The position numbers and the translations under genes were made by a program. A stretch of DNA of 64,000 nucleotides. It comes from Macrostomum hystrix. Its lineage: Eukaryota > Animalia > Platyhelminthes. Of the stretch, positions 2,880-25,715 are shown piece after piece. The stretch's first letter is position 1. Each line of letters starts with the position of its first letter. The notes under the pieces were generated by a model. It searched no databases and was not told the origin of the DNA. It worked only from the letters and a program-made list of their open reading frames with translations. The stretch spans positions 2,418,001-2,482,000 of the forward strand of contig CATNEN010000007.1 in assembly GCA_950097015.1 (NCBI GenBank). The letters run 5' to 3'.

Positions 2880-4010
2880 AACCTCTCATCAACTTCTCTC
2901 TCTCATCGTCTCTCGTCTCCTCTCATCCCATCTCATCCCATCTCATCCCCTCTCACCCCATCTCATTCCCTCTCAACCCCTCGCATCCCCTCGCAGCCCA
3001 TCTCATCCCTCTCATACCGTATCACCCCATCTCATCCCCTCTCATTCTCATCCCCTCTCATCTCCTCTCATCCCATATCATCCCCTCTCATACCGTATCA
3101 CTCCATCTCATCCCCTCTCATCTCCTCTCACCCCATCTCATCCCCTCTCATCCCTCTCATACTGTATCACCCCATCTCATCCCCTCTCATCCCCTCTCAT
3201 TCTCATCTCCTCTCATCCCATCTCATACCCTCTTATCCCCTCTCATACCGTAAACACACACACACACCCATAAACACACACACACACCCATAAACACACA
3301 CACACACACACCCATAAACACACACACACACCCATAAACACACACACACCCATAAACACACACACACACCCATAAACACACACACACACCCATAAACACA
3401 CACACACACACCCATAAACACACACACACACCCATAAACACACACACACACACACCCATAAACACACCCACACCCATACACACACACACACACACACACA
3501 CACCCAAAAACACACACACACCCATACACACACACACACACACACCCATAAACACACACACCCATAAACACACACACACACACATAAACACACCCACACC
3601 CATACACACACACACACACCCATAAACACACACACACACACACATAAACACACCCACACCCATACACACACACCCACACCCATAAACACACACACACACC
3701 CATAAACACACACACACACACCCATAAACACACACCCACACCCATACACACACACACACACCCATAAACACACACACACACCCATAAACACACCCACACC
3801 CATACACACACACACACCCATAAACACACACACACACACACACACATACCCCATCTCATCCTCTCTCATTCTCATCCCCTCTTATCCACTCTCATCCACT
3901 CTCACCCCTCTACCTCGCATCCTCTCTCCCTCTGATCCCTCTGGTTCTCACCCCTCTGCCTATTATCCCCTTTCCCCTTTCATCCCTTCTCCTTCTGACC
4001 CCTCACCTTT
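2880..4010. repeat. Pyrimidine-rich CATCTCATCCCCT-type degenerate repeat, interrupted at about 3250-3846 by a CCCATAAA(CA)n block
   Basis: Visible repeated catctcatcccct(ct) units on both sides of a CA-array segment. Confidence 0.9.
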
Positions 4011-4509
4011 CAAGAGGACTCCATTCCCAAACTTGCCTCTAAAAAGCGAACAATTCGGTAAGATTGGAGCGAGTGTAAGCAAGATGTGCATCGCCCGCAT
4101 TCCGCAGCAAATCTGAAGCTAAACAGCCGTCATCGATTTTTTCAGCGAAACGCGGAGTGGGATTCGGGGAAAAGACGCGGTGCAAAAGGGGATTGCAGCG
4201 GTTCGTAAACAAAGGCTTCGTGGATCTAGAGAGAGATTGGCAGGGGAGGTGGGGTGGGTGCCGCAGCAGCGACAGACGCATTGACATAGATTTTGCCATA
4301 GCCTCCAATGGCAGCAGTGCCAGCAAAGGATCCAAGCGGCAGTGCTAAAAATAGATTTGGCACTGGGGTGGGTGGGTGAATTCAGCCTGCTGACTAACCC
4401 AGCTGAAGCTTATAGGGGCCCAATTCTGTGTCTCGCTAACCATTCGATTCCACAAGTTCTGTAGCGACGATTTCAGCACATTTTTTGTCCAACATTTTTT
4501 TCACAAGCC

Positions 4510-7240: not shown

Positions 7241-7753
7241 ACGCAAAACAAGACAGCAAAGTTTTGATAAAGGTAAATAAGCACTTGAAGCATGACAATA
7301 AGCACGTATTTTTTAGTTGTAACGAAACAATTGTAAACAATTAAGTTTATTTTGCGAAAACCAAATCAGCTTTGGCAACTGAAATAGACAAATAGGATAA
7401 AATTTCGAATAAAATCATCTTTACAATACAACTTGAAGTAAAATACTAATTCTCGTGATAAGGTCGAAAAATTTTAATTAAATCTGACTACAAAGAAAAT
7501 TGACTATGATTAACAATATATCTAAACATTGGCACTTAAATTAAGTGAGGCCTGCGTCAAAAGACACATCACTGTTACATTTTGAATAGGCTTGGGTGGT
7601 ATTTTGACTTTGGCTGACACCAAACTTTGGTAGTTGATGCATCCGAGCAAAGTCAAACACGGGCCTCACTGTATGGAGGACAGATTCCTCTTACAGAGAC
7701 AATGAAACTAATCTGTCTGGTCAAGGTCATTTGATTGCCATAAGTAATGTTTG

Positions 7754-8014
7754 TCACTGATCAGCCGAGATTGGCTTGAAGTCCAGCTGACAGACGCGAC
7801 AGTGCAAGACGGGACTGTCTGGCGAGAGGCAGCAGCCGCCCAGCCGCACGCGACCAGCTTCGGCTTTGTCCAACAGCTCCTGACTGGGCCGGCCATAGAC
7901 TATGGGCACAATGTCCGGCAGCGGAGAATCTATATCCTCCACATCGGCCGGCGTGAACTGGCGACTGCACTTTGGACAGCGCGAGTCAGGATGAGCTGAC
8001 GGCTGCTCACTCAT
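7754..8014 (-). CDS. Small Cys-rich putative metal-binding protein, PIVYG/LGGCC family, paralog C (86 aa from ATG 8014)
   Basis: Intronless ORF MSEQPSAHPDSRCPKC...PIVYGRP...LGGCC...HCRVCQLDF with GC-rich coding-like composition. The motif spacing is identical in two neighbouring ORFs. Confidence 0.85.
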   Translation of the reverse strand: MSEQPSAHPDSRCPKCSRQFTPADVEDIDSPLPDIVPIVYGRPSQELLDKAEAGRVRLGGCCLSPDSPVLHCRVCQLDFKPISADQ

Positions 8015-8370
8015 CACTGCTCAGCTGCGGAGGTAGGTAGTGTGACGTAGGTTAAGGTTCACTACACTACATCGCTGATAGACCCATTTGGCCCAGATGT
8101 AGAGCCAGTGGTACAGCCGCAGCTAATGCACGGCGCTTCCAGTGGCTGTGTACTGCCGTTCAGTCCGTGGACTGTTTGGTCGATAAGATTGACTTTTTAT
8201 ATTAAACAAAATACAAAAAACAAGATAAAAGTAACTTGTTTTAATCCTGAAATATCAAAATATATTTAGCTGAAAAGGCGGTATAAAAATAAATTTAACA
8301 ATAATTTTTATCACAGACAGTAGATTAAGGATAAGAGGCCAGGTCAGGGTAGAGCCAGTAGACTCAGAAG

Positions 8371-8598
8371 CTACTCAGTCGTCAATGGTCTGTAGTTGAG
8401 CTTGCAGGCTTTGCAGTGCCAAGTCGGTGAGTTCACAGACACGCAGCAGCCGCCGAGCTTGATGGCGCCCGAGTCGGCCTGGGATCTCATGTCGAAATCC
8501 GGATAGCCATAGACAATTGGCACCGCCTGGTCGGGGCTGCCGCACTGGGGGCACGGCTGTCTCCGCTCAGGCTTTGCAGCCGACTCCTTCTCGCTCAT
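8371..8598 (-). CDS. Small Cys-rich putative metal-binding protein, PIVYG/LGGCC family, paralog B (75 aa)
   Basis: Intronless ORF with CPQC...PIVYGYP...LGGCC...HCKACKLNY. Confidence 0.87.
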   Translation of the reverse strand: MSEKESAAKPERRQPCPQCGSPDQAVPIVYGYPDFDMRSQADSGAIKLGGCCVSVNSPTWHCKACKLNYRPLTTE

Positions 8599-8852
8599 AT
8601 CGTTTCTCTCTTAATCGCTAAAACATTTAGAGAGCGACTTTTATTGCTGCTTCAAGCTGAGATGAGACTTTTTTCAAGTTTGAGGTGACACCGTTCTCTA
8701 GGGTAATCTATACCCAACGATAATTTGGACTCTATCTAACAAATCTAGTGATAATTTTATTACGATATCCCTAAAATCAATGGGAAATTGGTAGTCTGGG
8801 CTTAGAATAATTCTAGGGATAATTTGCAATTAACAAAAGACCACGGTATTTC

Positions 8853-8910
8853 CCCCTGGCGGAAGACCATGGGGTTATTGAGATTTTCGTGAAGGTCCAC
8901 CATATGGATT
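8853..8910. mobile_element. Deleted derivative of the CCCCTGG-ended MITE-like family
   Basis: cccctggcggaagaccatggggttatt...ttttcgtgaaggtccaccat matches the terminus and an internal motif of the 59205-59752 element. Confidence 0.45.
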
Positions 8911-9265
8911 ATGGCCTAGGAACGGCTGAGGACGCGTTTCTTGGCCGAGGCGAAGCCGAAGCTGAATATTATAGAAGATACAGAAAAAATTAAAATGAGG
9001 GCATTTGAAACACCCCCATGGTATTTTAACTGTAAAGAGATTAAGAGATCCCAAAGTCGAGAGGTACATTTTTATTTGGACCGCTAAAATTGAGGAAAAT
9101 TAGAATGAGTCTAGAATCCGAAAAAACGAGGGATTTAGAAAACTTAGGAATACAGAGAACTGTAAAAAGCTGAGGTCGCAAAAAATTATGGGATAATATG
9201 TCATCTAAAATAGTATAAATATACTACTGCCTGGGGTAAAAATATATGCATAACTCACAAACATA

Positions 9266-9575
9266 ATAATAATTGAATAATAATTGATTACACCTGCCCC
9301 AATTGGGTCAGATGTGCAGCGACAGCACAGCCGCAGCTAATGCGCGGCGCATCTGAAGGCTGCGTACAGCTGTTCAGTCCATGGACTGGGGGGACGCCAC
9401 ACCCACCTTCAATTATCCCAGCTGATGCTGGTACCCATTTAACAGCTGGGTGAACTGAAGCAATGCAGAGTTAAGTGTCTTGCTAAAGGACACAAATTGT
9501 TCAGGGGAGTCGGGAATCGAACCCCCGACCTTCAAGTCGTGAGTCCGACGCCCTAACCACTAGGTTACAACCTCT
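9266..9575 (-). mobile_element. CORE-type SINE family B (tRNA-Met-like head, CORE-like domain, AT-rich tail)
   Basis: The reverse complement has tagtggttagggcgtcggactcacgacttgaaggtcgggggttcgattccc (A and B boxes), followed by tgtgtcctttagcaagacacttaactctgcattgcttcagttcacccagctgttaaatggg, which resembles the MIR CORE. Further copies at 15059-15358 and 55741-56005. Confidence 0.85.
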
Positions 9576-9759
9576 TCACAAACATATATTCACAAAAAAA
9601 TTGGGGATAATATGCGATCAGAAGAACAAAAAACTTGAGGTTGAGGAATGAGGTTTCAATAGCAAAATTTAAAATAAAAAAGCAAGCAATGGTAACAGAA
9701 ATATCTAGGACGCGGATAGTATATCACAGCAGAATAGAGAAGCTCAATTTTTTTGTCGC

Positions 9760-9960
9760 TTAAAAGTCCAATTTGCAAGCAGCGCAATGGCTCCCAGGAC
9801 TGTCATTGTCCACGCAACAGCCGCCAAGTTTCACTTCGCCAGCCTTGGCTTTAGCCATCAGCTTAGGAGCCGGTTTGCCATAGACGATGGGCAGCACGTG
9901 CTGGCTGGTCTTGCAGTTCGGGCACTCTGGCTTGTCAGATTTGCCAGCGGGATTGTTCAT
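9760..9960 (-). CDS. Small Cys-rich putative metal-binding protein, PIVYG/LGGCC family, paralog A (66 aa)
   Basis: Intronless ORF with CPNC...PIVYGKP...LGGCC...HCAACKLDF. Confidence 0.87.
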   Translation of the reverse strand: MNNPAGKSDKPECPNCKTSQHVLPIVYGKPAPKLMAKAKAGEVKLGGCCVDNDSPGSHCAACKLDF

Positions 9961-10015
9961 TGTGCTCGCTGGAGTTTTTATTATTAATTAGAGTAAGGTT
10001 CAGCCATAGAATCTA

Positions 10016-10256
10016 TTTTACACTCAGGGCTAACCATGGATGAAGGAATACACTGGATTGTTCATCTGAAATAGTCTATGGTTCTTCTTATATGCATCCT
10101 TCTCTCTGCAGCTCTGGATTATTTTTTACTTTCATCAGCCAATTGATTTCTAGGGGGGTAATTTCCAAGTTTGGAGGAAAGAACTCGACCATAGACTATT
10201 TCAGATGAGCAATCCAGTATATTGCTTCATCCATGGGGCTAACCATGAGTGTAAAA
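10016..10256. mobile_element. MITE-like element with ~68-bp inverted arms, TA|CACTCA...TGAGTG|TA
   Basis: 10016-10083 is an imperfect reverse complement of 10188-10256 (ccatggatgaag..ata.actggattg.tcatctgaaatagtctatgg). Confidence 0.75.
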
Positions 10257-10811
10257 ACTTTGAATTGGCTGTCAAAGTGGACCTACTGTCAGCATCGTTA
10301 ATTACCTCGATGATCTTTGGCACTCATTTCAGTTCTCAGCTGTTTCTCAGTTGTTGCTCATTTATCTACCATTCAACTGCTAGGCTAACAGAATGAAAAT
10401 TTTCTTTTCGAGTCGGATTTTCAATTCGAAAGCAATCATGAATCAATTAATAGATGTATTTCAAATAAAAAATAAATAATGAACTGCAGCACACTTGCAA
10501 AATTATACTACTATTAGTAGTATGAAAGTTCACAGGAAACGGGTACCATGAGTCCAAGGACATGAATCAGATAATCTGACTAAGCATTATTCAGCATTAG
10601 CTTGCTAGGCGTAGTTATGGGATAGGGGGAACGGATGACTCAATGGTTCAATAGAGGAAACTCAGGCAGTGCTAATCAGTAAACTGGACTGAGCAACTAT
10701 ATAGAGAAAATAATAGCTGGATAAGATTAGTACTAAAGTAGTAGATATTGCGTCAAATAATTATACGCATACTCTTCAAAACTACTCTCCTAATACTGTC
10801 TAACTTCTCAT

Positions 10812-11643
10812 TCTATCACTCCACCCCCTTTACATCCTCACTCTACCCCCTTTACATCCTCACTCTACCCCCTTTACATCCTCACTCTACCCCCTTTACA
10901 TCCTCACTCTACCCCCTTTACATCCTCACTCTACTCCCTTTACATCCTCACTCTACTCCCTTTACATCCTCACTCTACTCCCTTTACATCCTCACTCTAC
11001 CCCCTTTACATCCTCACTCTACCCCCTTTACATCCTCACTCTACCCCTTTACATCCTCACTCTACCCCCTTTACATCCTCACTCTACCCCCTTTACATCC
11101 TCACTCTACCCCCTTTACATCCTCACTCTACTCCCTTTACATCCTCACTATACTCCCTTTACATCCTCACTCTACCCCCTTTACATCCTCACTCTACCCC
11201 CTTTACATCCTCACTCTACTCCCTTTACATCCTCACTATACTCCCTTTACATCCTCACTCTACTCCCTTTACATCCTCACTCTACTCCCTTTACATCCTC
11301 ACTCTACTCCCTTTACATCCTCACTCTACTCCCTTTACATCCTCACTCTACTCCCTTTACATCCTCACTCTACCCCCTTTACATCCTCACTCTACCCCCT
11401 TTACATCCTCACTCTACTACCCCCTTTACATCCTCACTCTACCCCCTTTACATCCTCACTCTACCCCCTTTACATCCTCACTCTACCCCTTTACATCCTC
11501 ACTCTACCCCCTTTACATCCTCACTCTACCCCCTTTACATCCTCACTCTACCCCCTTTACATCCTCACTCTACTCCCTTTACATCCTCACTCTACTCCCT
11601 TTACATCCTCAATCTACCCCCTTTACATCCTCAATCTACCCCC
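10812..11643. repeat. 22-bp minisatellite TTTACATCCTCACTCTACCCCC just downstream of the APEH stop codon
   Basis: About 37 tandem units with C/T variants and occasional indels. Confidence 0.96.
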
Positions 11644-11653
11644 ATATCGGCTC

Positions 11654-14600
11654 TTAATGATTGTCTTCGACGCCAAGGGCGTACCGATTGAACCACATAA
11701 CGATGTCGACAAAGACATTCGACTGCACCGGCACAGTGCTCAGGGGATGGCAGTCCTCCGGGCACTCCAGCAGGCGGGTTGGCACGCCGCGCGCCCTCAG
11801 GGCCCGGTAGAACTCGCGGCCCTGCTGCGGTGGCACGCGCAGATCCTTGCGCCCGATGGCCACCAGAGTCGGCGTGGTCACCTTGGCCGCGTGAGACAAC
11901 GGCGACTTGGACCAGAGCAGGGCCAGCGACTCGGCATCGGGCAGGCGGTCGTGGCTGAACGGCAGGCCGCACTGCTCGTAGACCCAGTCGGGAATGTCGG
12001 AGCTGCCAATCATGGTGGTCAGGTTGATGACGGGGTTGCGCATCACCGCCGCTTTGAATAGGCCCGGCCGCTGGCCAATCAGGTGGCCGGTGAGGAAGCC
12101 GCCGTGAGAGCCGCCGAACACGGCCAGACAGCCGGGGTCCAGGCGGGGCCGACCTTCAGTTGACTTCTGCGAGAACTCGGCCAGGGTCTCCTCCACCGCC
12201 TGCAGGCAGTCGGACACGTCGCGTTCACCGATGCCGCCGAGTAGCGAGTCGACGGTGGACTTGCCGAAGCCCAGGGAGCCCCGGTAGTTGATGAGGAGAA
12301 CAGCGTAGCCGCACCTGGCCGGAGGGTGGGTGGGTGCGAGTGTCTGCGACCTCTCTGAGTTGTGCTGTAAGCGCAGATTGCTTTTCATACAACTTCAAGT
12401 GGCTGGCTCGAGTTTCTTTCTATTGTTCCACTGAGAGCAAGCTTGAGTGTCAGATAATCAACGTACAACTATTCAGTCCATGGACTGGGCCGGGAGCCGC
12501 CACACCCACTCGAATTTCTACCGCAGCAGATGCTCGTTCCTAAATAATTTTTTCGCTCAAGGATACGAATGGTTCGCCCAAGGTCTAAGATTCGAACTTC
12601 AGACCTCTCACCGACCACCGAGGCTCTGACTGTTGTGTCACTGTTCAATACCAGTACGCATTTGTGACTGCACACCGCACTATGGATCGCAATTCAATAT
12701 ACAAATATGAAAGTGGAGAGCGGGGTCGGTGGCAGAGCGGTCAACGCGTTTGCCTCTCGCGCCAATGTCCCGGAGCTCTATTCCGCGTAGAGACCACTTT
12801 CATTTAGTGCGTAGCCGCTGAAAGAAGGCCTGGAGGCTTGTCGCGTGGAATTTACGCCCCTGAGGGCCTCCAAGGCACATCAAGAGTGTACAGTTCCTGA
12901 TGATGAGAAAGTCAGGGCAGATGTACACACCTGTGTGAGTGTGTGCCTGCGTACATTATCTGTGTGAGTGTGTGCTCAGGAGTCAGCGAAATGGGCAGAA
13001 TTGCCTCCGCGCTGGCTGCGGGTCTAGTGTCACCAAACGATGTACCAATTCCCACAGCCCTCCTGAAAAAAGTATAATTATTAAGATGGATAGCCGACTC
13101 AACTTAGAGTTTAGTCTAACTACCTACGACTAGTATCTGCCTGGTCCTTGCTAAAGTATATTAAACCAGCAGGCTTAGCTATCTCTCATTTACATCAGCA
13201 ATCTATGGGCCGCAAGTTCACCTCTATCTACTCCGTAAGAAAGTATCATTTAAGACAAGTGGTCCCAGAGCCCGCTCGCCCACCTCACTAGCCCGCAGAC
13301 GTAGCGCATGTAGACGGTGGTGAATGCAGTATTTGGTCCGCCGTGCGGAAAAGCCACCAACGGCACTGCGGCGTCGTCTGCCTCGGCATTGGAGGCCGAC
13401 TCAGCCTTCTCATCGTCGCCCTTCTTGCTCTCCTTGGCCCTGCTGTCGGCTGCAGGCCAGACCAGAATGGACTCGAACAGCTGATTGCCGAACTCCGGGT
13501 GGGCCAGACTGGCCGTGTGCTGCTTCACTCGCCAGCCGATGTCGTCCAGCCTGGCGCACTCTGTCAGGCAGGTCCAGCGAATGTTGGAGGTCAGCGGTTT
13601 GGACGGGTCAACAAAGCCGGCGGTGATGAACGGCGGCACGTTTGGCGCGCTGGCTTCCACAATGAGCCAATCGCGGTGAAAGTCCAGCACACGGACGCTG
13701 CTGGCTCCCTGCGGCAGGGGCAGCATCTCGCCCAGCTTAGTCTTGACGTCGATGGCCAGCAGGCTGTCGTTGCTGCGGTTGTTGCTATCCAGAATCACCG
13801 TGCGACAGTTTGACGACCAGCAACGGGGCGGCAGGTTGCCGGAGTAGATTCCGGGAAATCCCGTGCTGCCCGCCTGAAACAGAATGAGGGCGAACATGAG
13901 AACATGCTTTCATGGGAGTGAAGACTGAAAGGAAGCCAGAACTGAGGCCTGAAATGAAGCCTGAACTGAGGCCTGAAATGAAGCCAGAGCTGAGGCCTGA
14001 AATGAAGCCAGAACTGAGGCCTGAAATGAAGCCAGAACTGAGGCCTGAAATGAAGCCAGAACTGAGGCCTGAAATGAAGCCAGAACTGAGGCCTGAAATG
14101 AAGCCTGAAATGAAGCCTGAACTGAGGCCTGAAATGAAGCCTGAACTGAGGCCTGAAATGAGGCCTGAACTGAGGCCTGAAATGAAGCCTGAACTGAGGC
14201 CTGAAATGAAGCCAGAACTGAGGCCTGAAATGAAGCCAGAACTGAGGCCTGAAATGAAGCCTGAACTGAGGCCTGAAATGAAGCCAGAACTGAGGCCTGA
14301 AATGAAGCCAGAACTGAGGCCTGAAATGAAGCCAGAACTGAGGCCTGAAATGAAGCCTTAACTGAGGCCTGAAATGAAGCCTGAGTTAAAGGCACAGAGG
14401 AATCCGATATTGTTCTGCAGTGAGTCCCGGTTCTGACATATGACAATGCATACCTGATGCACAAAGTCGATTATGACCCGGATGTCCTTAGTGGCCCAGT
14501 CACACCAAATCAGCCGCCGACACTGGGCGTGGGCGCCGGAAGGCTCGTTCTGCAGCCAGATAAGCTGCTTCTGGCAGGGGCTGAAGCGAGGCGCCGAGAC

Positions 14601-16131
14601 AGCGCGACAGTCGTGACCGACAATGATGCATTCGTTAGTTTGAAAGTGCAGATAATAGACAGAGGAGGGTCGCTGCTCGCAGTAGATTATGCCCAGCTGG
14701 TAAGGCAGTTTTCTATAGCCCACAAACACGATGCCAGTGTCATCCGGGGCCCAGTACGGCTGGGTGGGCAGGGCGTCCTCCGGGATGCCCTCGTCTAGCA
14801 CGGTAATCACCTCCGAGTCGATGTCCAGTGTGCACAGCACGGGCCGCTTGTACTCGGAGAGTTGCTCGCCAAAATTCTCCTCTGAGTCGTATTGCTGGCC
14901 GACAGACTTCGGGTCGCCGGATCTGGCGCTGGTTAGAGAAGGATAGATAATTGAGCATGTCGCGATGGGGATACAAAATAGAGCAGACGAAGACAAGGAA
15001 ACAAAGCCAAAGACAGGAAACATGCATGGAATAAGCTGGCAGAGAATATTTTAGACAGATAATAATAATTGATTACACCTGCCTCAATTAAGCCGGATGT
15101 GCAGCCCACAGCACAGCCGCAGCTATTGCGCAGTGCAATCTGAAGGCTGCGTACAGCTGTTCAGTCCATGGACTGGGGGGACGCCACACCCACCCTCAAT
15201 TACCCCAGCTGATGCTGGCACCCATTTTACAGCTGGGTGAACTGAAGCAATGCAGAGTTAAGTGTCTTGCTAAAGGACACAAATTGTTCCTGTGGAGTCG
15301 GGAATCGAACCACCGACCTTCAAGTCGTGAGTCCGACGCCCTAACCACTAGGCTACAGACAGTAGACAGATACTGTCTACATAGACAGATAGATAGACAG
15401 GCAAAGTGTGAGTTTGACAGACAGTGTGACAGTCGAAGAGAATAAGTGTGGCAGCATGACAGACAGCTTAGCAGACAAAAAATGTCTGACAGAAACACAA
15501 AGAAACACAAGAAACCACAAACAGCCACAAGAAAATTAGAGAAACCTACTCAGATAAAAAAAAATAAAGTAGTCACAAAGAAGTAGCAAGCACAAACTCA
15601 CTTGCCAGCATCCTCGTTAGCGGCGAAATAAGACAGCTTCTTTGGCTGCTTCTTCTCGGCAACGTACAGCAGGTGGCCCTCGTTGTAGGACCACTGGCAG
15701 GCGCCCAGATCGGGGCCGTACACAGCGCCGTGCTTGGCCTTCTCGCTCAGGTCGATGCTCTTCACAAAGCGTGACTCGTTGTAGATGTGCGCCACAAATT
15801 TTTCGGCGCTGTCGCCGCCATTCTCGGGCTTCAGCTTGAGGATCACGGCCCGGTGATCGCCGCCGCTGCAGTGGACATCCCAGAGGGTGGCCGGGTCGCG
15901 CAGGACGGGATCAGAGTCCACCAGATCGCCGCTAGGTAGAACTACAGCGGTCTTGACTAGAGTTCGATTCTTCTGGCTGGCCAGGTCCTGCACCTGATAG
16001 ACGCAGCGAGCCCTGATGGCGTCGCTGAACGGGCAGGGAGGCAGCAGCTGGGCTGACTGCGGCACGGGGTAGGCTGCCAGATCAGTGTACACCTTGGCCA
16101 CCTCACTGGCTGATTTGGCTGATGACTTCAT
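11654..16131 (-). CDS. APEH: Acylamino-acid-releasing enzyme (acylpeptide hydrolase, S9 family), 751 aa, 4 exons
   Basis: Exons 16131-15602, 14928-14454, 13873-13284 and 12314-11654 have GT-AG ends and matching phases (2256 nt in total). The protein is colinear with APEH: [24 protein letters not shown], catalytic GGSHGG Ser, DLRVP Asp and DCHPLS His. Confidence 0.96.
12455..12625 (-). mobile_element. Diverged relative of SINE family B in APEH intron 3
   Basis: Shares ttcagtccatggactggg...gccacacccac and a degenerate gattcgaac B-box with family B. Confidence 0.5.
12713..13065 (+). mobile_element. tRNA-derived SINE family A in APEH intron 3
   Basis: Head gtcggtggcagagcggtcaacgcgtttgcctctcgc...; the body matches the other two full copies in the opposite orientation. 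Confidence 0.8.
13935..14385. repeat. 24-bp minisatellite CTGAGGCCTGAAATGAAGCCAGAA in APEH intron 2
   Basis: About 18 units lying entirely between splice sites 14453 and 13874. Confidence 0.95.
15059..15358 (-). mobile_element. CORE-type SINE family B in APEH intron 1
   Basis: Near-identical to 9266-9575. Confidence 0.85.
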
Positions 16132-16250
16132 TGCGATCAGAGAGACAACTTGAGCTGGATTTGCTGATAGAAATTTTAGGCTTTGATTGGAGAGGCCAGA
16201 TGAACTCAATAGTATTCGACTGAAGAGTGCGGACAGCTGCAGCTGGAATT

Positions 16251-19200
16251 CAATGGTGTTCTGGTCACAGTCCAATTAAGGTCAATGGTGTTCTGGTCAC
16301 AGTCCAATTAAGGTCAATGGTGTTCTGGTCACAGTCCAATTAAGGTCAATGGTGTTCTGGTCACAGTCCAATTAAGGTCAATGGTGTTCTGGTCACAGTC
16401 CAATTAAGGTGAATGGTGTTCTGGTCACAGTCCAATTAAGGTGAATGGTTTTCTGGTCACAGTCCAATTAAGGTGAATGGTGTTCTGGTCACAGTCCAAT
16501 TAAGGTGAATGGTGTTCTGGTCACAGTCCAATTAAGGTGAATGGTTTTCTGGTCACAGTCCAATTAAGGTGAATGGTGTTCTCGTCACAGTCTAATACAG
16601 GTGAATGGTGTGCTGGTCAGTCTAATACAGATGAATGGTGTTCTCGTCACAGTCTAATACAGGTGAATGGTGTTCTGGTCAGTCTAATACAGTTGAATGG
16701 TGTGCTGGTCACAGTCTAATACAGGTGAATGGTGAGCTGGTCAGTCTAATACAGTTGAATGGTGTGCTGGTCACAGTCTAATACAGGTGAATGGTGTGCT
16801 GGTCACAGTCTAATACAGGTGAATGGTGAGCTGGTCAGTCTAATACAGGTGAATGGTGTGCTGGTCACAGTCTAATACAGGTGAATGGTGTGCTGGTCAC
16901 AGTCTAATACAGGTGAATGGTGAGCTGGTCACAGTCTAATACAGGTGAATGGTGTGCTGGTCAGTCTAATACAGGTGAATGGTGAGCTGGTCAGTCTAAT
17001 ACAGTTGAATGGTGTGCTGGTCACAGTCTAATACAGGTGAATGGTGTGCTGGTCACAGTCTAATACAGGTGAATGGTGAGCTGGTCAGTCTAATACAGGT
17101 GAATGGTGTGCTGGTCAGTCTAATACAGGTGAATGGTGTGCTGGTCAGTCTAATACAGGTGAATGGTGTGCTGGTCAGTCTAATGCAGGTGAATGGTGTG
17201 CTGGTCAGTCTAATACAGGTGAATCGTGTTCTGGTCACAGTCTAATACAGGTGAATGGTGTGCTGGTCAGTCTAATACAGGTGAATCGTGTTCTGGTCAC
17301 AGTCTAATACAGGTGAATGGTGTGCTGGTCAGTCTAATACAGGTGAATGGTGTGCTGGTCAGTCTAATACAGGTGAATGGTGTGCTGGTCAGTCTAATAC
17401 AGGTGAATGGTGTGCTGGTCACAGTCTAATACAGGTGAATGGTGTGCTGGTCAGTCTAATACAGGTGAATGGTGTGCTGGTCAGTCTAATACAGGTGAAT
17501 GGTGTGCTGGTCAGTCTAATACAGGTGAATGGTGAGCTGGTCAGTCTAATACAGGTGAATCGTGTTCTGGTCACAGTCTAATACAGGTGAATCGTGTGCT
17601 GGTCACAGTCTAATACAGGTGAATCGTGTTCTGGTCACAGTCTAATACAGGTGAATGGTGTGCTGGTCAGTCTAATACAGGTGAATGGTGTGCTGGTCAG
17701 TCTAATACAGGTGAATGGTGTGCTGGTCAGTCTAATACAGGTGAATGGTGTGCTGGTCAGTCTAATACAGGTGAATGGTGTGCTGGTCAGTCTAATACAG
17801 GTGAATCGTGTTCTGGTCACAGTCTAATACAGGTGAATCGTGTTCTGGTCACAGTCTAATACAGGTGAATCGTGTTCTGGTCACAGTCTAATACAGGTGA
17901 ATGGTGTGCTGGTCAGTCTAATACAGGTGAATGGTGTGCTGGTCAGTCTAATACAGGTGAATGGTGTTCTGGTCAGTCTAATACAGGTGAATGGTGTGCT
18001 GGTCAGTCTAATACAGGTGAATGGTGTGCTGGTCAGTCTAATACAGGTGAATGGTGTTCTGGTCAGTCTAATACAGGTGAATGGTGTGCTGGTCAGTCTA
18101 ATACAGGTGAATGGTGTGCTGGTCAGTCTAATACAGGTGAATGGTGAGCTGGTCAGTCTAATACAGGTGAATCGTGTTCTGGTCACAGTCTAATACAGGT
18201 GAATCGTGTTCTGGTCACATTCTAATACAGGTGAATGGTGTGCTGGTCAGTCTAATACAGGTGAATCGTGTTCTGGTCACATTCTAATACAGGTGAATCG
18301 TGTTCTGGTCACAGTCTAATACAGGTGAATCGTGTTCTGGTCAGTCTAATACAGGTGAATCGTGTTCTGGTCACAGTCTAATACAGGTGAATCGTGTTCT
18401 GGTCACAGTCTAATACAGGTGAATCGTGTTCTGGTCACAGTCTAATACAGGTGAATGGTGTGCTGGTCAGTCTAATACAGGTGAATGGTGTGCTGGTCAG
18501 TCTAATACAGGTGAATGGTGAGCTGGTCACAGTCTAATACAGGTGAATCGTGTTCTGGTCACAGTCTAATACAGTTGAATCGTGTTCTGGTCACAGTCTA
18601 ATACAGGTGAATCGTGTTCTGGTCAGTCTAATACAGGTGAATCGTGTTCTGGTCACAGTCTAATACAGGTGAATCGTGTTCTGGTCACAGTCTAATACAG
18701 GTGAATCGTGTTCTGGTCACAGTCTAATACAGGTGAATGGTGTGCTGGTCAGTCTAATACAGGTGAATGGTGTGCTGGTCAGTCTAATACAGGTGAATGG
18801 TGTGCTGGTCAGTCTAATACAGGTGAATGGTGAGCTGGTCAGTCTAATACAGGTGAATCGTGTTCTGGTCACAGTCTAATACAGGTGAATCGTGTTCTGG
18901 TCAGTCTAATACAGGTGAATCGTGTTCTGGTCACAGTCTAATACAGGTGAATGGTGTGCTGGTCAGTCTAATACAGGTGAATGGTGTGCTGGTCAGTCTA
19001 ATACAGGTGAATGGTGTGCTGGTCAGTCTAATACAGGTGAATCGTGTTCTGGTCACAGTCTAATACAGGTGAATCGTGTTCTGGTCACATTCTAATACAG
19101 GTGAATGGTGTGCTGGTCAGTCTAATACAGGTGAATGGTGTGCTGGTCAGTCTAATACAGGTGAATGGTGAGCTGGTCAGTCTAATACAGGTGAATGGTG

Positions 19201-22200
19201 AGCTGGTCAGTCTAATACAGGTGAATCGTGTTCTGGTCACAGTCTAATACAGGTGAATCGTGTTCTGGTCAGTCTAATACAGGTGAATCGTGTTCTGGTC
19301 ACAGTCTAATACAGGTGAATGGTGTGCTGGTCAGTCTAATACAGGTGAATGGTGTGCTGGTCAGTCTAATACAGGTGAATGGTGTGCTGGTCAGTCTAAT
19401 ACAGGTGAATCGTGTTCTGGTCACAGTCTAATACAGGTGAATCGTGTTCTGGTCACATTCTAATACAGGTGAATGGTGTGCTGGTCAGTCTAATACAGGT
19501 GAATGGTGTGCTGGTCAGTCTAATACAGGTGAATGGTGTGCTGGTCAGTCTAATACAGGTGAATCGTGTTCTGGTCACAGTCTAATACAGGTGAATCGTG
19601 TTCTGGTCACAGTCTAATACAGGTGAATCGTGTTCTGGTCACATTCTAATACAGGTGAATGGTGTGCTGGTCAGTCTAATACAGGTGAATCGTGTTCTGG
19701 TCACATTCTAATACAGGTGAATCGTGTTCTGGTCACAGTCTAATACAGGTGAATCGTGTTCTGGTCACAGTCTAATACAGGTGAATCGTGTTCTGGTCAC
19801 ATTCTAATACAGGTGAATGGTGTGCTGGTCAGTCTAATACAGGTGAATGGTGTGCTGGTCAGTCTAATACAGGTGAATCGTGTTCTGGTCACAGTCTAAT
19901 ACAGGTGAATGGTGTGCTGGTCAGTCTAATACAGGTGAATGGTGTGCTGGTCACAGTCTAATACAGGTGAATGGTGTGCTGGTCAGTCTAATACAGGTGA
20001 ATGGTGTGCTGGTCAGTCTAATACAGGTGAATCGTGTTCTGGTCACAGTCTAATACAGGTGAATGGTGTGCTGGTCAGTCTAATACAGGTGAATCGTGTT
20101 CTGGTCACAGTCTAATACAGGTGAATGGTGTGCTGGTCAGTCTAATACAGGTGAATGGTGTTCTGGTCACATTCTAATACAGGTGAATGGTGTGCTGGTC
20201 AGTCTAATACAGGTGAATCGTGTTCTGGTCACATTCTAATACAGGTGAATCGTGTGCTGGTCACAGTCTAATACAGGTGAATCGTGTTCTGGTCACAGTC
20301 TAATACAGGTGAATCGTGTTCTGGTCACAGTCTAATACAGGTGAATGGTGTGCTGGTCAGTCTAATACAGGTGAATGGTGTGCTGGTCAGTCTAATACAG
20401 GTGAATCGTGTTCTGGTCACAGTCTAATACAGGTGAATCGTGTTCTGGTCACAGTCTAATACAGGTGAATCGTGTTCTGGTCACAGTCTAATACAGGTGA
20501 ATGGTGTGCTGGTCAGTCTAATACAGGTGAATGGTGTGCTGGTCAGTCTAATACAGGTGAATCGTGTTCTGGTCACAGTCTAATACAGGTGAATGGTGTG
20601 CTGGTCAGTCTAATACAGGTGAATGGTGTGCTGGTCAGTCTAATACAGGTGAATGGTGTGCTGGTCAGTCTAATACAGGTGAATGGTGTGCTGGTCACAG
20701 TCTAATACAGGTGAATCGTGTGCTGGTCACAGTCTAATACAGGTGAATGGTGTGCTGGTCAGTCTAATACAGGTGAATGGTGTGCTGGTCAGTCTAATAC
20801 AGGTGAATGGTGTGCTGGTCAGTCTAATACAGGTGAATGGTGTTCTGGTCAGTCCAATACAGGTGAATGGTGTGCTGGTCAGTCTAATACAGGTGAATGG
20901 TGTGCTGGTCAGTCTAATACAGGTGAATGGTGTGCTGGTCACAGTCTAATACAGGTGAATGGTGTGCTGGTCAGTCTAATACAGGTGAATCGTGTTCTGG
21001 TCAGTCTAATACAGGTGAATGGTGTGCTGGTCAGTCTAATACAGGTGAATGGTGTGCTGGTCAGTCTAATACAGGTGAATGGTGTGCTGGTCAGTCTAAT
21101 ACAGGTGAATGGTGTGCTGGTCAGTCTAATACAGGTGAATCGGTGTGCTGGTCAGTCTAATACAGGTGAATCGTGTTCTGGTCACAGTCTAATACAGGTG
21201 AATCGTGTTCTGGTCACAGTCTAATACAGGTGAATGGTGTGCTGGTCAGTCTAATACAGGTGAATCGTGTGCTGGTCAGTCTAATACAGGTGAATGGTGT
21301 GCTGGTCAGTCTAATACAGGTGAATCGTGTTCTGGTCACAGTCTAATACAGGTGAATCGTGTTCTGGTCACATTCTAATACAGGTGAATGGTGTTCTGGT
21401 CAGTCTAATACAGGTGAATGGTGTGCTGGTCAGTCTAATACAGGTGAATGGTGTGCTGGTCAGTCTAATACAGGTGAATCGGTGAGCTGGTCAGTCTAAT
21501 ACAGGTGAATCGTGTTCTGGTCACAGTCTAATACAGGTGAATCGTGTTCTGGTCACAGTCTAATACAGGTGAATGGTGTGCTGGTCAGTCTAATACAGGT
21601 GAATCGTGTTCTGGTCACATTCTAATACAGGTGAATGGTGTGCTGGTCAGTCTAATACAGGTGAATCGTGTGCTGGTCAGTCTAATACAGGTGAATCGTG
21701 TGCTGGTCACAGTCTAATACAGGTGAATCGTGTTCTGGTCACAGTCTAATACAGGTGAATCGTGTTCTGGTCACATTCTAATACAGGTGAATGGTGTGCT
21801 GGTCAGTCTAATACAGGTGAATGGTGTTCTGGTCACAGTCTAATACAGGTGAATGGTGAGCTGGTCAGTCTAATACAGGTGAATGGTGAGCTGGTCTCTA
21901 CAGGTGATCTTCTGGTCACAGTCTAATACAGGTGAATCGTGTTCTGGTCAGTCTAATACAGGTGAATCGTGTTCTGGTCACAGTCTAATACAGGTGAATG
22001 GTGTGCTGGTCAGTCTAATACAGGTGAATGGTGTGCTGGTCAGTCTAATACAGGTGAATGGTGTGCTGGTCAGTCTAATACAGGTGAATCGTGTTCTGGT
22101 CACAGTCTAATACAGGTGAATCGGTGTTCTGGTCACATTCTAATACAGGTGAATGGTGTGCTGGTCAGTCTAATACAGGTGAATGGTGTGCTGGTCAAGT

Positions 22201-25200
22201 CTAATACAGGTGAATGGTGTGCTGGTCCAGTCTAATACAGGGTGAATCGTGTTCTGGTCACAGTCTAATACAGGTGAATCGTGTTCTGGTCACAGTCTAA
22301 TACAGGTGAATCGTGTTCTGGTCACAGTCTAATACAGGTGAATGGTGTGCTGGTCAGTCTAATTACAGGTGAATGGTGTGCTGGTCACAGTCTAATACAG
22401 GTGAATGGTGTGCTGGTCACAGTCTAATACAGGTGAATCGTGTGCTGGTCACAGTCTAATACAGGTGAATCGGTGTGCTGGTCAGTCTAATACAGGTGAA
22501 TGGTGTGCTGGTCAGTCTAATACAGGTGAATGGTGTTCTGGTCAGTCTAATACAGGTGAATGGTGTGCTGGTCAGTCTAATACAGGTGAATGGTGTGCTG
22601 GTCAGTCTAATACAGGTGAATGGTGTAGCTGGTCAGTCTAATACAGGTGAATGGTGTGCTGGTCAGTCTAATACAGGTGAATCGTGTTCTGGTCACAGTC
22701 TAATACAGGTGAATGGTGTGCTGGTCAGTCTAATACAGGTGAATCGGTGTTCTGGTCAGTCTAATACAGGTGAATGGTGTGCTGGTCAGTCTAATACAGG
22801 TGAATCGTGTGCTGGTCAGTCTAATACAGGTGAATCGTGTGCTGGTCACAGTCTAATACAGGTGAATCGTGTTCTGGTCACAGTCTAATACAGGTGAATG
22901 GTGTTCTGGTCAGTCTAATACAGGTGAATGGTGTGCTGGTCACAGTCTAATACAGGTGAATCGTGTTCTGGTCACATTCTAATACAGGTGAATGGTGTGC
23001 TGGTCAGTCTAATACAGGTGAATCGTGTGCTGGTCAGTCTAATACAGGTGAATCGTGTTATGGTCACATTCTAATACAGGTGAATGGTGTGCTGGTCAGT
23101 CTAATACAGGTGAATCGTGTTCTGGTCACAGTCTAATACAGGTGAATGGTGTGCTGGTCAGTCTAATACAGGTGAATGGTGTGCTGGTCAGTCTAATACA
23201 GGTGAATCGTGTTCTGGTCACATTCTAATACAGGTGAATGGTGTGCTGGTCAGTCTAATACAGGTGAATCGTGTTCTGGTCACAGTCTAATACAGGTGAA
23301 TGGTGTGCTGGTCACAGTCTAATACAGGTGAATGGTGTGCTGGTCAGTCTAATACAGGTGAATCGTGTTCTGGTCACAGTCTAATACAGGTGAATGGTGT
23401 GCTGGTCAGTCTAATACAGGTGAATGGTGTGCTGGTCAGTCTAATACAGGTGAATGGTGTGCTGGTCAGTCTAATACAGGTGAATGGTGTGCTGGTCAGT
23501 CTAATACAGGTGAATGGTGTGCTGGTCAGTCTAATACAGGTGAATGGTGTGCTGGTCAGTCTAATACAGGTGAATCGTGTTCTGGTCACAGTCTAATACA
23601 GGTGAATGGTGTGCTGGTCACAGTCTAATACAGGTGAATGGTGTGCTGGTCAGTCTAATACAGGTGAATCGTGTTCTGGTCACAGTCTAATACAGGTGAA
23701 TGGTGTGCTGGTCAGTCTAATACAGGTGAATGGTGTGCTGGTCAGTCTAATACAGGTGAATGGTGTGCTGGTCAGTCTAATACAGGTGAATGGTGTGCTG
23801 GTCAGTCTAATACAGGTGAATCGTGTTCTGGTCACAGTCTAATACAGGTGAATGGTGAGCTGGTCAGTCTAATACAGGTGAATGGTGTGCTGGTCAGTCT
23901 AATACAGGTGAATGGTGTGCTGGTCAGTCTAATACAGGTGAATCGTGTTCTGGTCACAGTCTAATACAGGTGAATGGTGAGCTGGTCAGTCTAATACAGG
24001 TGAATCGTGTTCTGGTCACAGTCTAATACAGGTGAATGGTGTGCTGGTCAGTCTAATACAGGTGAATGGTGAGCTGGTCAGTCTAATACAGGTGAATCGT
24101 GTTCTGGTCACAGTCTAATACAGGTGAATCGTGTTCTGGTCACAGTCTAATACAGGTGAATCGTGTTCTGGTCACAGTCTAATACAGGTGAATGGTGTGC
24201 TGGTCAGTCTAATACAGGTGAATGGTGTGCTGGTCAGTCTAATACAGGTGAATGGTGTGCTGGTCACAGTCTAATACAGGTGAATCGTGTTCTGGTCACA
24301 GTCTAATACAGGTGAATCGTGTTCTGGTCACAGTCTAATACAGGTGAATGGTGAGCTGGTCAGTCTAATACAGGTGAATGGTGTGCTGGTCACATTCTAA
24401 TACAGGTGAATGGTGAGCTGGTCAGTCTAATACAGGTGAATGGTGTGCTGATCAGTCTAATACAGGTGAATCGTGTTCTGGTCAGTCTAATACAGGTGAA
24501 TGGTGAGCTGGTCAGTCTAATACAGGTGAATGGTGAGCTGGTCAGTCTAATACAGGTGAATGGTGTGCTGGTCAGTCTAATACAGGTGAATGGTGTGCTG
24601 GTCAGTCTAATACAGGTGAATGGTGTGCTGGTCAGTCTAATACAGGTGAATCGTGTTCTGGTCAGTCTAATACAGGTGAATGGTGAGCTGGTCAGTCTAA
24701 TACAGGTGAATGGTGAGCTGGTCAGTCTAATACAGGTGAATGGTGTGCTGGTCAGTCTAATACAGGTGAATGGTGTGCTGGTCAGTCTAATACAGGTGAA
24801 TGGTGAGCTGGTCAGTCTAATACAGGTGAATCGTGTTCTGGTCACAGTCTAATACAGGTGAATGGTGAGCTGGTCAGTCTAATACAGGTGAATGGTGAGC
24901 TGGTCAGTCTAATACAGGTGAATGGTGTGCTGGTCAGTCTAATACAGGTGAATGGTGTGCTGGTCAGTCTAATACAGGTGAATGGTGTGCTGGTCAGTCT
25001 AATACAGGTGAATCGTGTTCTGGTCAGTCTAATACAGGTGAATGGTGAGCTGGTCAGTCTAATACAGGTGAATGGTGAGCTGGTCAGTCTAATACAGGTG
25101 AATGGTGTGCTGGTCAGTCTAATACAGGTGAATGGTGTGCTGGTCAGTCTAATACAGGTGAATGGTGAGCTGGTCAGTCTAATACAGGTGAATCGTGTTC

Positions 25201-25715
25201 TGGTCACAGTCTAATACAGGTGAATGGTGAGCTGGTCAGTCTAATACAGGTGAATGGTGAGCTGGTCAGTCTAATACAGGTGAATGGTGTGCTGGTCAGT
25301 CTAATACAGGTGAATGGTGTGCTGGTCAGTCTAATACAGGTGAATGGTGAGCTGGTCAGTCTAATACAGGTGAATGGTGTGCTGGTCACAGTCTAATACA
25401 GGTGAATGGTGAGCTGGTCACAGTCTAATACAGGTGAATGGTGTGCTGGTCAGTCTAATACAGGTGAATGGTGAGCTGGTCAGTCTAATACAGGTGAATG
25501 GTGAGCTGGTCAGTCTAATACAGGTGAATCGTGTTCTGGTCACAGTCTAATACAGGTGAATGGTGAGCTGGTCAGTCTAATACAGGTGAATGGTGTGCTG
25601 GTCAGTCTAATACAGGTGAATGGTGTGCTGGTCAGTCTAATACAGGTGAATCGTGTTCTGGTCACAGTCTAATACAGGTGAATGGTGAGCTGGTCACAGT
25701 CTAATGCAGGTGAAT
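16251..25715. repeat. 9.5-kb tandem satellite of 30/32-bp units, consensus TCTAATACAGGTGAATGGTGTGCTGGTCA(CA)G
   Basis: About 300 units with a few recurring variants and no unique spacers. Confidence 0.98.

Follow-up and report, generated by a model that had tools for sequence, protein, structure and literature searches.

Small metal-binding domains built on zinc-ribbon or rubredoxin-type knuckle pairs carry CPxC(G) and CxxC(G) at their two ends, as in Zn_Ribbon_YjdM/PhnA, Zn_ribbon_PaaD, FmdB (CxxC_CxxC_SSSS), the HypA zinc domain, L37ae, TFS and Dof. The PIVYG/LGGC family, to which we assign three genes of the flatworm Macrostomum hystrix, is arranged likewise. However, it has an insert of ~35 residues between the knuckles that holds (I/V)YGxP and, with a fifth near-invariant Cys, LGGC, and is absent from those families. 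Zinc-ribbon-type models of Pfam or NCBIfam match some bacterial members below threshold; for the flatworm proteins, the curated Pfam zinc-ribbon models reach 10–17 bits at best, against cut-offs of 22–34. Rubredoxin differs from them in both knuckle order and insert, with no Pfam match and an E value of 0.5 for the RCKP-type rubredoxin-like model of NCBIfam. Glutaredoxin/NrdH proteins also present CPxC, a V-P-(I/V) strand and GG(C) in a similar order. We regard this likeness as chance: the gap from CPxC to VP is 5–8 and not ~40, the gap from strand to GG is 16 and not ~5, and there is no thioredoxin-fold or Pfam match.

The second point of comparison is the domestication of bacterial genes by animals. 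To our knowledge, well-supported bacterial-to-animal transfers are still few, and within a limited library of literature we found no transfer reported for the PIVYG/LGGC family or for macrostomid flatworms, nor anything on the motif or the M. lignano gene identifiers used below. With such domesticated genes, the three M. hystrix genes share a probable bacterial origin, surroundings of host repeats, mRNA processing of the host type and purifying selection; they differ in being still intronless, very small and tandemly expanded. We put the probability at about 0.8 that they represent a functional, old, domesticated and tandemly duplicated bacterial gene in a macrostomid flatworm, encoding a predicted metal-binding domain.

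The window that we analysed is a stretch of 64,000 nucleotides, and the three genes lie on its minus strand. Each consists of a short coding sequence and a stop codon: g66 (66 aa, 9760–9960; motif at 9817–9891), g75 (75 aa, 8371–8598; motif at 8446–8520) and g86 (86 aa, 7754–8014; motif at 7832–7906), termed paralogs A, B and C in the original prediction. The length of g86 is counted from its ATG; the open frame reaches one codon further, to a GTG at 8017. Pairwise identity is 40–49%, and an alignment of the three proteins has 24 invariant columns, made up of CP-x-C, PIVYG-x-P, A, G, LGGCC, SP and HC-x2-C-x-L. A degenerate DNA pattern for PIVYGxP-x10-G-x3-LGGC matched the window at these three sites only and matched none of 100 shuffled windows (0 expected by chance). 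Alignment, pattern scan and shuffles thus uphold the initial observation of three same-strand ORFs with a common motif. All three frames are uninterrupted and hold the complete family motif set, CPxC, (I/V)YGxP, G-x3-LGGC and P-x2-x-C-x2-(C/D/H). The acidic insert noticed after the CxxC of g86 is likewise real and is 13 residues long; in M. lignano, the orthologous protein carries a shorter one there.

Upstream of g66 lies an APEH-like S9 peptidase gene (minus strand, 11654–16275, the upper limit being approximate) with Pfam Peptidase_S9 at 11654–12388 and APEH_N at 14358–15023. Its coding sequence falls into separate ORFs within the window, in keeping with the earlier remark that host neighbours carry introns, and its M. 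lignano counterparts are gene models of 599–775 aa coded over 4.2–4.7 kb. Between this gene and g66 is a 22-bp tandem array of 37.6 copies (10816–11643). Between g66 and g75 is a host interspersed repeat (9284–9575) with a summed contig depth of 3,000–4,500 and hundreds of variant contigs; by eye it looks tRNA-derived and SINE-like, and ARAGORN called no tRNA gene there. A partial copy sits upstream of g86 at 8113–8174, joined to 9327–9388 by a direct repeat, D2, at 84% identity. The window also holds a Ty3/gypsy element.

The same gene order is found in M. lignano. Two loci of that species (L003 and L004) have an APEH-like gene upstream of the flatworm-type copies, and in Mlig_3_7 the APEH-like gene is followed by a g66-type and then a g86-type gene, in the order and orientation of the window. 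This arrangement is carried on two contigs, of 83 and 749 kb; we saw no counterpart of g75 in the M. lignano syntenic loci. With host repeats between the copies and synteny across two species, the three genes are physically integrated in host DNA.

We followed transcription using public assembled contigs, rather than raw reads, aligned to positions 7400–10700, for which the run type is a guess ('?' or 'RNA?'). Contigs match each gene at 99.8–100% identity, end at an AG 8–20 nt upstream of the ATG and continue into 20–23 non-genomic letters. For g66, the transcript-like contig spans 9547–9969 on the minus strand, from the acceptor AG at 9970–9969 to the 3' end; the X4 and X5 contigs each differ from the genome by one letter and have 23 extra letters beyond 9969. 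The g75 contig (8266–8618, minus strand; acceptor AG at 8619–8618) is covered by X5 over 8266–8618 and by X4 over 8322–8618, both at 100% identity and with 23 extra letters beyond 8618. For g86 (7480–8025, minus strand; acceptor AG at 8026–8025), the X4 and X5 contigs are 566 nt long, 100% identical and extended by 20 letters at the 8025 end. Further coverage comes from an X1 contig (7699–7968, g86) and an X3 contig (9793–9969, g66).

The loose end of this X3 contig, read in reverse complement, equals the final 20 nt of the published Macrostomum spliced leader. Leader letters are read at this one junction (9969); the g75 (8618) and g86 (8025) junctions are probably of the same kind, given their identical geometry. 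Coverage is confined to the three gene bodies, and 8621–8842, between g75 and g66, is uncovered. From acceptor to 3' end, the contigs are colinear with the genome and have no joints inside the genes, which bears out the original prediction that the ORFs lack introns. The three genes are thus transcribed, with at least one spliced-leader junction, and their mRNA processing is of the host type. The spliced leader ends in an ATG whose reading frame differs from that of each of the three ORFs, so translation would need leaky scanning or reinitiation.

Comparison with M. lignano revealed purifying selection. g66 and its orthologue BOX15_Mlig010596g1 are 56–60% identical in amino acids (pN 0.278, pS 0.645), and g86 and its orthologue BOX15_Mlig009883g3 are 63–66% identical (pN 0.256, pS 0.717). 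The resulting pN/pS values are 0.43 for g66 and 0.36 for g86 with pS saturated, equivalent to a dN/dS of roughly 0.13–0.24, rough values because synonymous sites are saturated. ORFs are intact in five of five flatworm genes (three in the window and two in M. lignano), and all family-defining residues are kept. The g66 and g86 types have thus been under purifying selection since the presumed transfer; together with transcripts and trans-splicing, a dN/dS well below 1 between orthologues agrees with the earlier view of these as functional genes.

Profile searches place the three proteins in a family that, judging from its members' sources, is large, unnamed and overwhelmingly prokaryotic. A profile including the window proteins retrieved 5,661 clusters, formed at 50% identity, with a threshold of E ≤ 1e-3; tightening this to 1e-10 left 1,290. 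Scanning genomes with the DNA pattern revealed no fewer than 120 species of bacteria or archaea from ~18 phyla, including Actinomycetota, Bacteroidota, Chloroflexota, Planctomycetota, Bacillota and Methanobacteriota. Membership of g66, g75 and g86 is evident from an end-to-end profile match, the motif set and the predicted fold. Pfam, NCBIfam, PHROGs and PADLOC hold no model that scores above cut-off, and a sequence profile found no relative in the PDB. Among the best 120–150 matches per search, the animal relatives are two M. lignano genes only. On both counts, a motif found mainly in prokaryotes and the lack of a characterised animal family, the original prediction agrees with these searches.

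With a flatworm-only profile, the two M. lignano proteins and P0118, a sequence from the MERC/Tara marine eukaryote metatranscriptome that groups with the flatworm sequences, are followed by metagenome, MAG or unnamed-source proteins at 1e-20 to 1e-15. The nearest bacterial proteins are 59–65% identical to g66 in the core. Among these matches, P0162 is lipoprotein-like and lies on a myxobacteria-like contig, and P0163/P0169 are signal-peptide-like on a Bacteroidota-like contig; the P0162 and P0169 contigs, both of which we examined, have bacterial gene content. A word-indexed search for relatives of P0118 returned two proteins: one of 70 aa from an ENA metagenome, and one with a signal peptide, encoded on a MAG contig whose gene content is bacterial. 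Many bacterial members have export signals (by eye) or fusions to CarboxypepD_reg, UDG, EEP or TPR domains. The domain itself is alike end to end in prokaryotes and flatworms, but the flatworm copies differ in having no signal peptide, short charged N-terminal tails, trans-splicing and a place in an animal chromosome.

Genomic context in prokaryotes is varied. Across 120 prokaryotic loci there is no universal partner among conserved neighbours; the commonest is an ADP-ribosylglycohydrolase gene (7 of 120 loci), which overlaps the family gene in Candidatus Limnocylindrus, where the two are probably co-translated, and lies close to it in one Aminicenantes and one Planctomycetales MAG. Microbacteriaceae have the family gene behind an HTH gene and close to recA. 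All these links are tied too closely to particular lineages for us to assign a function from them. Searching GenBank phages and PLSDB plasmids with tblastn returned no family member. Elsewhere, we found one match in 2.9 million IMG/VR contigs, one BFVD phage protein and two prophage-like contigs, and given so few viral matches, phage carriage is occasional.

What the domain might do can be approached from conservation among 279 family members, of which 120 were chosen by the PIVYG/LGGC motif itself. The knuckle residues C16, C19 and C62 are Cys in 97%, 93% and 98% of members, and position 65 is Cys in 81% and Asp or His in Bacteroidota-type members. This pattern, including the alternation of Cys, Asp and His at the fourth ligand, agrees with the four-ligand Zn-ribbon or rubredoxin-like site proposed initially. 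A second proposal, that the GGCC pair forms another metal or redox site, is not supported in that form. The first Cys, C51, is conserved in 98% of the 279 members, a figure that, like those for the other PIVYG/LGGC columns, is inflated by the motif-based picking of 120, whereas the second position is Cys in 32%; because of this low share, GGCC contains no conserved Cys pair.

An AF2 model (mean pLDDT 82) has a strand-helix-strand insert. Compared with ESM Atlas members, it gives TM scores of 0.75–0.78 by query and 0.70–0.96 by match, with an rmsd of 0.5–1.4, and one phage family member in BFVD matches structurally at E 1.8e-6; all ESM Atlas and BFVD matches are the family's own unnamed members. 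Foldseek found nothing in the PDB at E ≤ 0.001. The best VIA-align Z score is 2.8, and the neighbours are the zinc modules Dof, L37ae and TFS4 (Z 2.1–2.8). From the family alignment, we surmise that the domain, of ~60 residues, most likely binds one metal ion (Zn, possibly Fe) through an N-terminal CPxC and a C-terminal C-x2-(C/D/H) knuckle. The knuckles would clamp a beta-alpha-beta insert with the near-invariant motifs (I/V)YGxP and LGGC. The LGGC Cys adds a fifth conserved thiol, away from the knuckles, and probably marks a functional surface, which may bind a ligand or partner or act as a redox site.

We examined ancestry using trees of 66 alignment columns, which are unrooted and poorly resolved and support no specific donor clade. 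g66 pairs with its M. lignano copy at support 99/86 and g86 with its own at 100/86; these four sequences and P0118 form a clade at 97/84, the one eukaryote clade among the bacterial sequences of this poorly resolved tree. Because P0118 nests inside the Macrostomum clade, beside the g86 type, it adds no second eukaryote lineage. g75 has a long branch outside the clade of the other flatworm copies in both free trees. It may accordingly be asked whether g75 was acquired apart from the g66 and g86 types, through two or more independent transfers, a reading to which the missing g75 orthologue in the M. lignano syntenic loci would also lend itself. We consider this unlikely: g75 is the middle gene of one same-strand tandem cluster, flanked by g66 and g86, its best identity to any sequence is with a flatworm copy (50–52%), and forcing it into the flatworm clade raised the likelihood by 15 and 9 lnL units in two tests (p-AU 0.85 and 0.63). 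Neither the tree nor the AU test speaks against a single origin of the flatworm copies. An ancient eukaryote or animal family, inherited vertically and lost nearly everywhere but in macrostomids, could account for the further eukaryote-catalogue sequence, P0118, and for weak matches beyond the best 150 that have no taxon assignment. This is quite improbable, as it requires massive loss across eukaryotes, P0118 falls within the Macrostomum clade, and the matches that follow come from metagenome, MAG or unnamed sources, with P0162 and P0169 in bacterial context.

Bacterial contamination or chimeric assembly would explain a family so overwhelmingly prokaryotic, the intronless ORFs and their GC of 0.55–0.61, above flanks of ~0.40–0.44. 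It is effectively refuted by the flatworm spliced leader joined to the g66 transcript, the host repeats and satellites between and around the copies, and the same order beside an intron-bearing gene on long M. lignano contigs; moreover, host coding DNA nearby has a similar GC (0.56 at 12–14 kb), and the nearest bacterial proteins share only 59–65% identity. The genes might instead be transcribed but non-functional relics, passengers of a polycistronic or read-through transcript. The out-of-frame leader ATG and the position of the cluster downstream of a same-strand gene, operons being common in M. lignano, would fit. Nevertheless, a separate trans-splice acceptor lies a short way before the ATG of each gene, and five flatworm ORFs have stayed intact, with family residues kept and pN/pS at 0.36–0.43, despite saturated synonymous sites, making this very improbable.

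Domestication of a bacterial gene is the reading we prefer. A bacterial source is most likely because the family is otherwise almost entirely bacterial, and the proposal of a horizontally acquired, locally expanded system gains from a eukaryote set that can form one clade among bacterial sequences and from two-species synteny with host repeats between copies. A small gene from bacteria would have reached the macrostomid lineage in one old transfer. Tandem duplication would have followed, with the g66 and g86 types predating the split from M. lignano and g75 being either a later, fast-evolving copy or one lost in M. lignano. Each of the three intronless genes would be transcribed independently, its mRNA receiving a cap through spliced-leader trans-splicing. 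Since the family has no known function, no adaptive story can be read from annotation.

What makes this a clean transfer case is the combination of host integration and tandem expansion with trans-splicing, purifying selection and a synteny kept between deeply diverged species. It also points to a very large family of small Cys-rich prokaryotic proteins, with thousands of clusters and no Pfam, NCBIfam or PDB entry. We tentatively raise the possibility, itself doubtful, that PIVYG/LGGC is an undescribed, widespread prokaryotic metallo-thiol module, with a catalytic, redox or binding activity centred on the LGGC Cys, which macrostomids captured and expanded for a new role in the animal. RNAi and transgenesis are possible in M. 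lignano, a genetic model that therefore offers a direct experimental route to the function of the family. If the metallo-thiol reading is true, this flatworm would be the most tractable system for uncovering the role of thousands of bacterial homologues.

Three small genes, named here for the lengths of their products, lie on the minus strand of the window: g66 (9760-9960, 66 aa), g75 (8371-8598, 75 aa) and g86 (7754-8014, 86 aa counted from the ATG at 8014, one codon after the GTG placed by the ORF caller). In this order they correspond to the original paralogs A, B and C. Aligned, their proteins share 24 invariant columns and are 40-49% identical, and an acidic insert of 13 residues follows the CxxC of g86, as originally described. 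A degenerate DNA pattern for PIVYGxP-x10-G-x3-LGGC matched the window at exactly these three sites and in 0 of 100 shuffles. ORF calls, alignment and pattern scan agree on three same-strand ORFs with a common motif, and the observation is real rather than chance. The coding GC of the small genes (0.55-0.61) resembles that of adjacent host coding DNA (0.56) more closely than it does a recent import.

We compared positions 7400-10700 with contigs, which do not report expression levels, from four public sequencing runs of guessed kind. Transcript-like contigs span all three genes, giving the RNA support called for by the original prediction. In two runs of one study, X4 and X5, they cover 7480-8025 and 8266/8322-8618 with zero mismatches and 9547-9969 with one differing letter each; none of the contigs from these runs covers intergenic 8621-8842 or 10064-10396. 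The contigs end at the G of an AG (8026-8025, 8619-8618 and 9970-9969) that lies 8-20 nt ahead of the ATG; beyond it, every contig has 20-23 extra non-genomic letters. In X3, a run from a separate study, the unmatched end at 9969 reads ATGCAATAAATTGAGTCTTC. Reverse-complemented, these letters equal the 20 nt that precede the final G of the M. lignano spliced leader. This leader is 35 nt long (PMC8629364) and is reported to be highly conserved in M. cliftonense and M. hystrix (PMC10468722). The match shows that g66 is spliced-leader trans-spliced, at the single junction whose letters were read; from identical contig geometry, we infer the same for g75 and g86. No joint was found inside any of the three genes in the contig-to-genome comparison, and they therefore lack introns, as had been claimed. 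Read from the sequence, the terminal ATG of the leader is out of frame with all three genes. After trans-splicing it would start short upstream ORFs on the minus strand (8007-8024, 8566-8617 and 9957-9968); the stop of the one at g66 overlaps the main start as ATGA.

The surrounding DNA is eukaryotic, with large satellites, an APEH-like S9 peptidase gene in several separate ORF pieces (11654-16275, minus strand) and a Ty3/gypsy-type pol ORF (42969-47192, plus strand). The latter, an uninterrupted and apparently intact 1,407 aa, encodes aspartyl protease, RVT_1, RNase H, integrase zinc-binding (H2C2) and rve domains. The best non-self match is M. lignano BOX15_Mlig010596g1 (assembly GCA_002269645.1, Mlig_3_7). 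Two M. lignano contigs of 83 kb and 749 kb carry, on one strand, an intron-bearing APEH-like gene, a 69-aa copy and an 80-aa copy bearing an insert after its CxxC, identical in order and orientation to APEH-like, g66, (g75), g86 in the window. The DNA separating the window copies contains a highly repeated SINE-like element (9284-9575), for which the summed contig depth reaches the thousands, together with a partial copy at 8113-8174. Because the window is eukaryotic, gene order is conserved in M. lignano and host repeats sit between the copies, bacterial contamination is excluded.

Other repeats surround the cluster. The SINE-like element looks tRNA-derived by eye, and ARAGORN calls no tRNA in it; it is flanked by 30-nt direct repeats (9176-9205 and 9590-9619) that are 80% identical and separated by 414 nt; their length would be unusual in a target-site duplication. 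Each species has an intergenic tandem array in the small-gene cluster, and the two are unrelated: a 22-bp array (x37.6) at 10816-11643, between the APEH-like gene and g66, and a different repeat of ~1.2 kb between the two small genes of M. lignano (locus L003, 8665-9870). Adjoining the APEH-like gene, just upstream, is a 9.5-kb satellite of 30-bp units (16252-25715; ~307 copies, 93% matches, GC skew +0.3). CA-rich 20-bp arrays (CACACACACACACACCCATAA-like) at 309-2260 and 3251-3848, with GC skew down to -0.9, give rise to long spurious ORFs. Just upstream of g66, at 10033-10237, a palindromic MITE-like hairpin resembles the Rfam plant MIR2646 model below threshold (39.6 bits; gathering score 245), surely by chance or structure.

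A flatworm-built profile ranked two M. lignano proteins highest (123 and 120 bits), followed by P0118 (104 bits), a protein from the MERC catalogue of Tara Oceans eukaryote metatranscriptomes. Below it, scores fall to 89 bits or less, for metagenome, MAG or unnamed-source proteins 59-65% identical to g66; the two whose contigs were examined, P0162 and P0169, have bacterial gene context. A careful IQ-TREE tree of 66 columns joined g66 to its M. lignano orthologue (99/86) and g86 to its own (100/86), placed P0118 beside the g86 pair (98/77) and united all five (97/84), a grouping unchanged on adding P0261 and P0262, the closest non-flatworm relatives of P0118. In free trees g75 was a long, unplaced branch. 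Trees forcing all flatworm copies together, with or without P0118, had higher likelihood than the free trees, and the AU test did not reject them (p-AU 0.85 and 0.63). The most economical interpretation is a single transfer from bacteria to the macrostomid lineage, with tandem duplication preceding the divergence of the two species; the tree names no donor phylum. The original prediction of a horizontally acquired, locally expanded system fits both these trees, which are compatible with a single origin, and the same-order copies in M. lignano. All five flatworm ORFs are intact and keep every family-defining residue. The proposed dN/dS check, by Nei-Gojobori counts on codon alignments of orthologue pairs, gave approximately 0.13 for g86 (pN 0.256, pS 0.717) and 0.24 for g66 (pN 0.278, pS 0.645), ratios that are rough because synonymous sites are saturated.

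The motif had been taken to be mainly prokaryotic and foreign to any characterised animal family, and both points held in the databases searched. Exhaustive profile searching at E <= 1e-3 recovered 5,661 clusters (50% identity), 1,290 of them passing E <= 1e-10, and the DNA pattern matched at least 120 species among GTDB representative genomes, including Actinomycetota, Bacteroidota, Chloroflexota, Planctomycetota, Bacillota, Gemmatimonadota and Methanobrevibacter. The window proteins and their bacterial relatives had nothing above cut-off in Pfam or NCBIfam and no match in PHROGs or PADLOC. Members mostly stand alone at 60-100 aa. By eye, the N-termini of some resemble a signal peptide or lipobox; in others the domain is joined to a CarboxypepD_reg, UDG, endonuclease/exonuclease/phosphatase or TPR domain, and tandem doubles occur. 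Across 120 loci we found no family-wide conserved neighbour, the commonest being ADP-ribosylglycohydrolase (7 of 120, mostly one genus). In Candidatus Limnocylindrus and related Chloroflexota (L038, L042, L068, L090, L093), the small gene overlaps the start of the ADP-ribosylglycohydrolase gene by 11 nt, which suggests an operon, and an ORF in a Bifidobacteriaceae MAG (L011) joins an ARH-like N-terminal motif to the family domain. Phage or plasmid carriage is rare. Two loci (L001, L002) hold Actinobacterial-type members inside a prophage-like block with terminase, capsid, DnaG-type zinc ribbon and HTH repressor.

Structure prediction, another suggested check, gave an AF2 model (98-sequence alignment) with mean pLDDT 82, in which residues 25-29 (PIVY) form a strand and residues 35-43 a helix; another short strand precedes LGGC, and the C-terminal part folds as a hairpin around the second knuckle. 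Outside the family, its structural matches are limited to weak zinc modules (Dof, Z 2.8; L37ae, 2.3; TFS4, 2.1). Across 279 members (g75 numbering), Cys occupies position 16 in 97%, 19 in 93%, 62 in 98% and 65 in 81%; members without C65 mostly have Asp or His, such as the Bacteroidota-type ending C-K-(K/R)-(D/H)-x3-F. Alternation of Cys, Asp and His at one position is metal-ligand behaviour and supports a predicted metal site at C16/C19/C62/(C,D,H)65, in keeping with the Zn-ribbon or rubredoxin-like site first envisaged. The second metal or redox site imagined at GGCC is not supported, its pair not being conserved: C51 (LGGC) is Cys in 98% and C52 in only 32%. The PIVYG and LGGC columns are inflated because 120 of the 279 members were chosen by the PIVYG/LGGC pattern, outside which the knuckle columns lie. 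His occurs at position 61 in 34%. Since C51 is conserved with the YGxP and GG glycines, the alignment favours a putative functional surface with a specific role over a finger that is purely structural.

We put the probability that the mini-domain binds metal at about 0.6. Metal would stabilise it, and it may display a loop with a conserved thiol that serves in binding or redox chemistry; the flatworm proteins, which have no signal peptide, would therefore act in the cytosol or nucleus. The flatworm cluster is the same in kind as domesticated bacterial genes in animals, a known phenomenon. Our literature search found no paper on the family or on its macrostomid presence, expansion or expression. 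What is new is the family itself, which is large, prokaryotic and unannotated, and the finding that macrostomid flatworms carry it, have expanded it and express it as trans-spliced transcripts.
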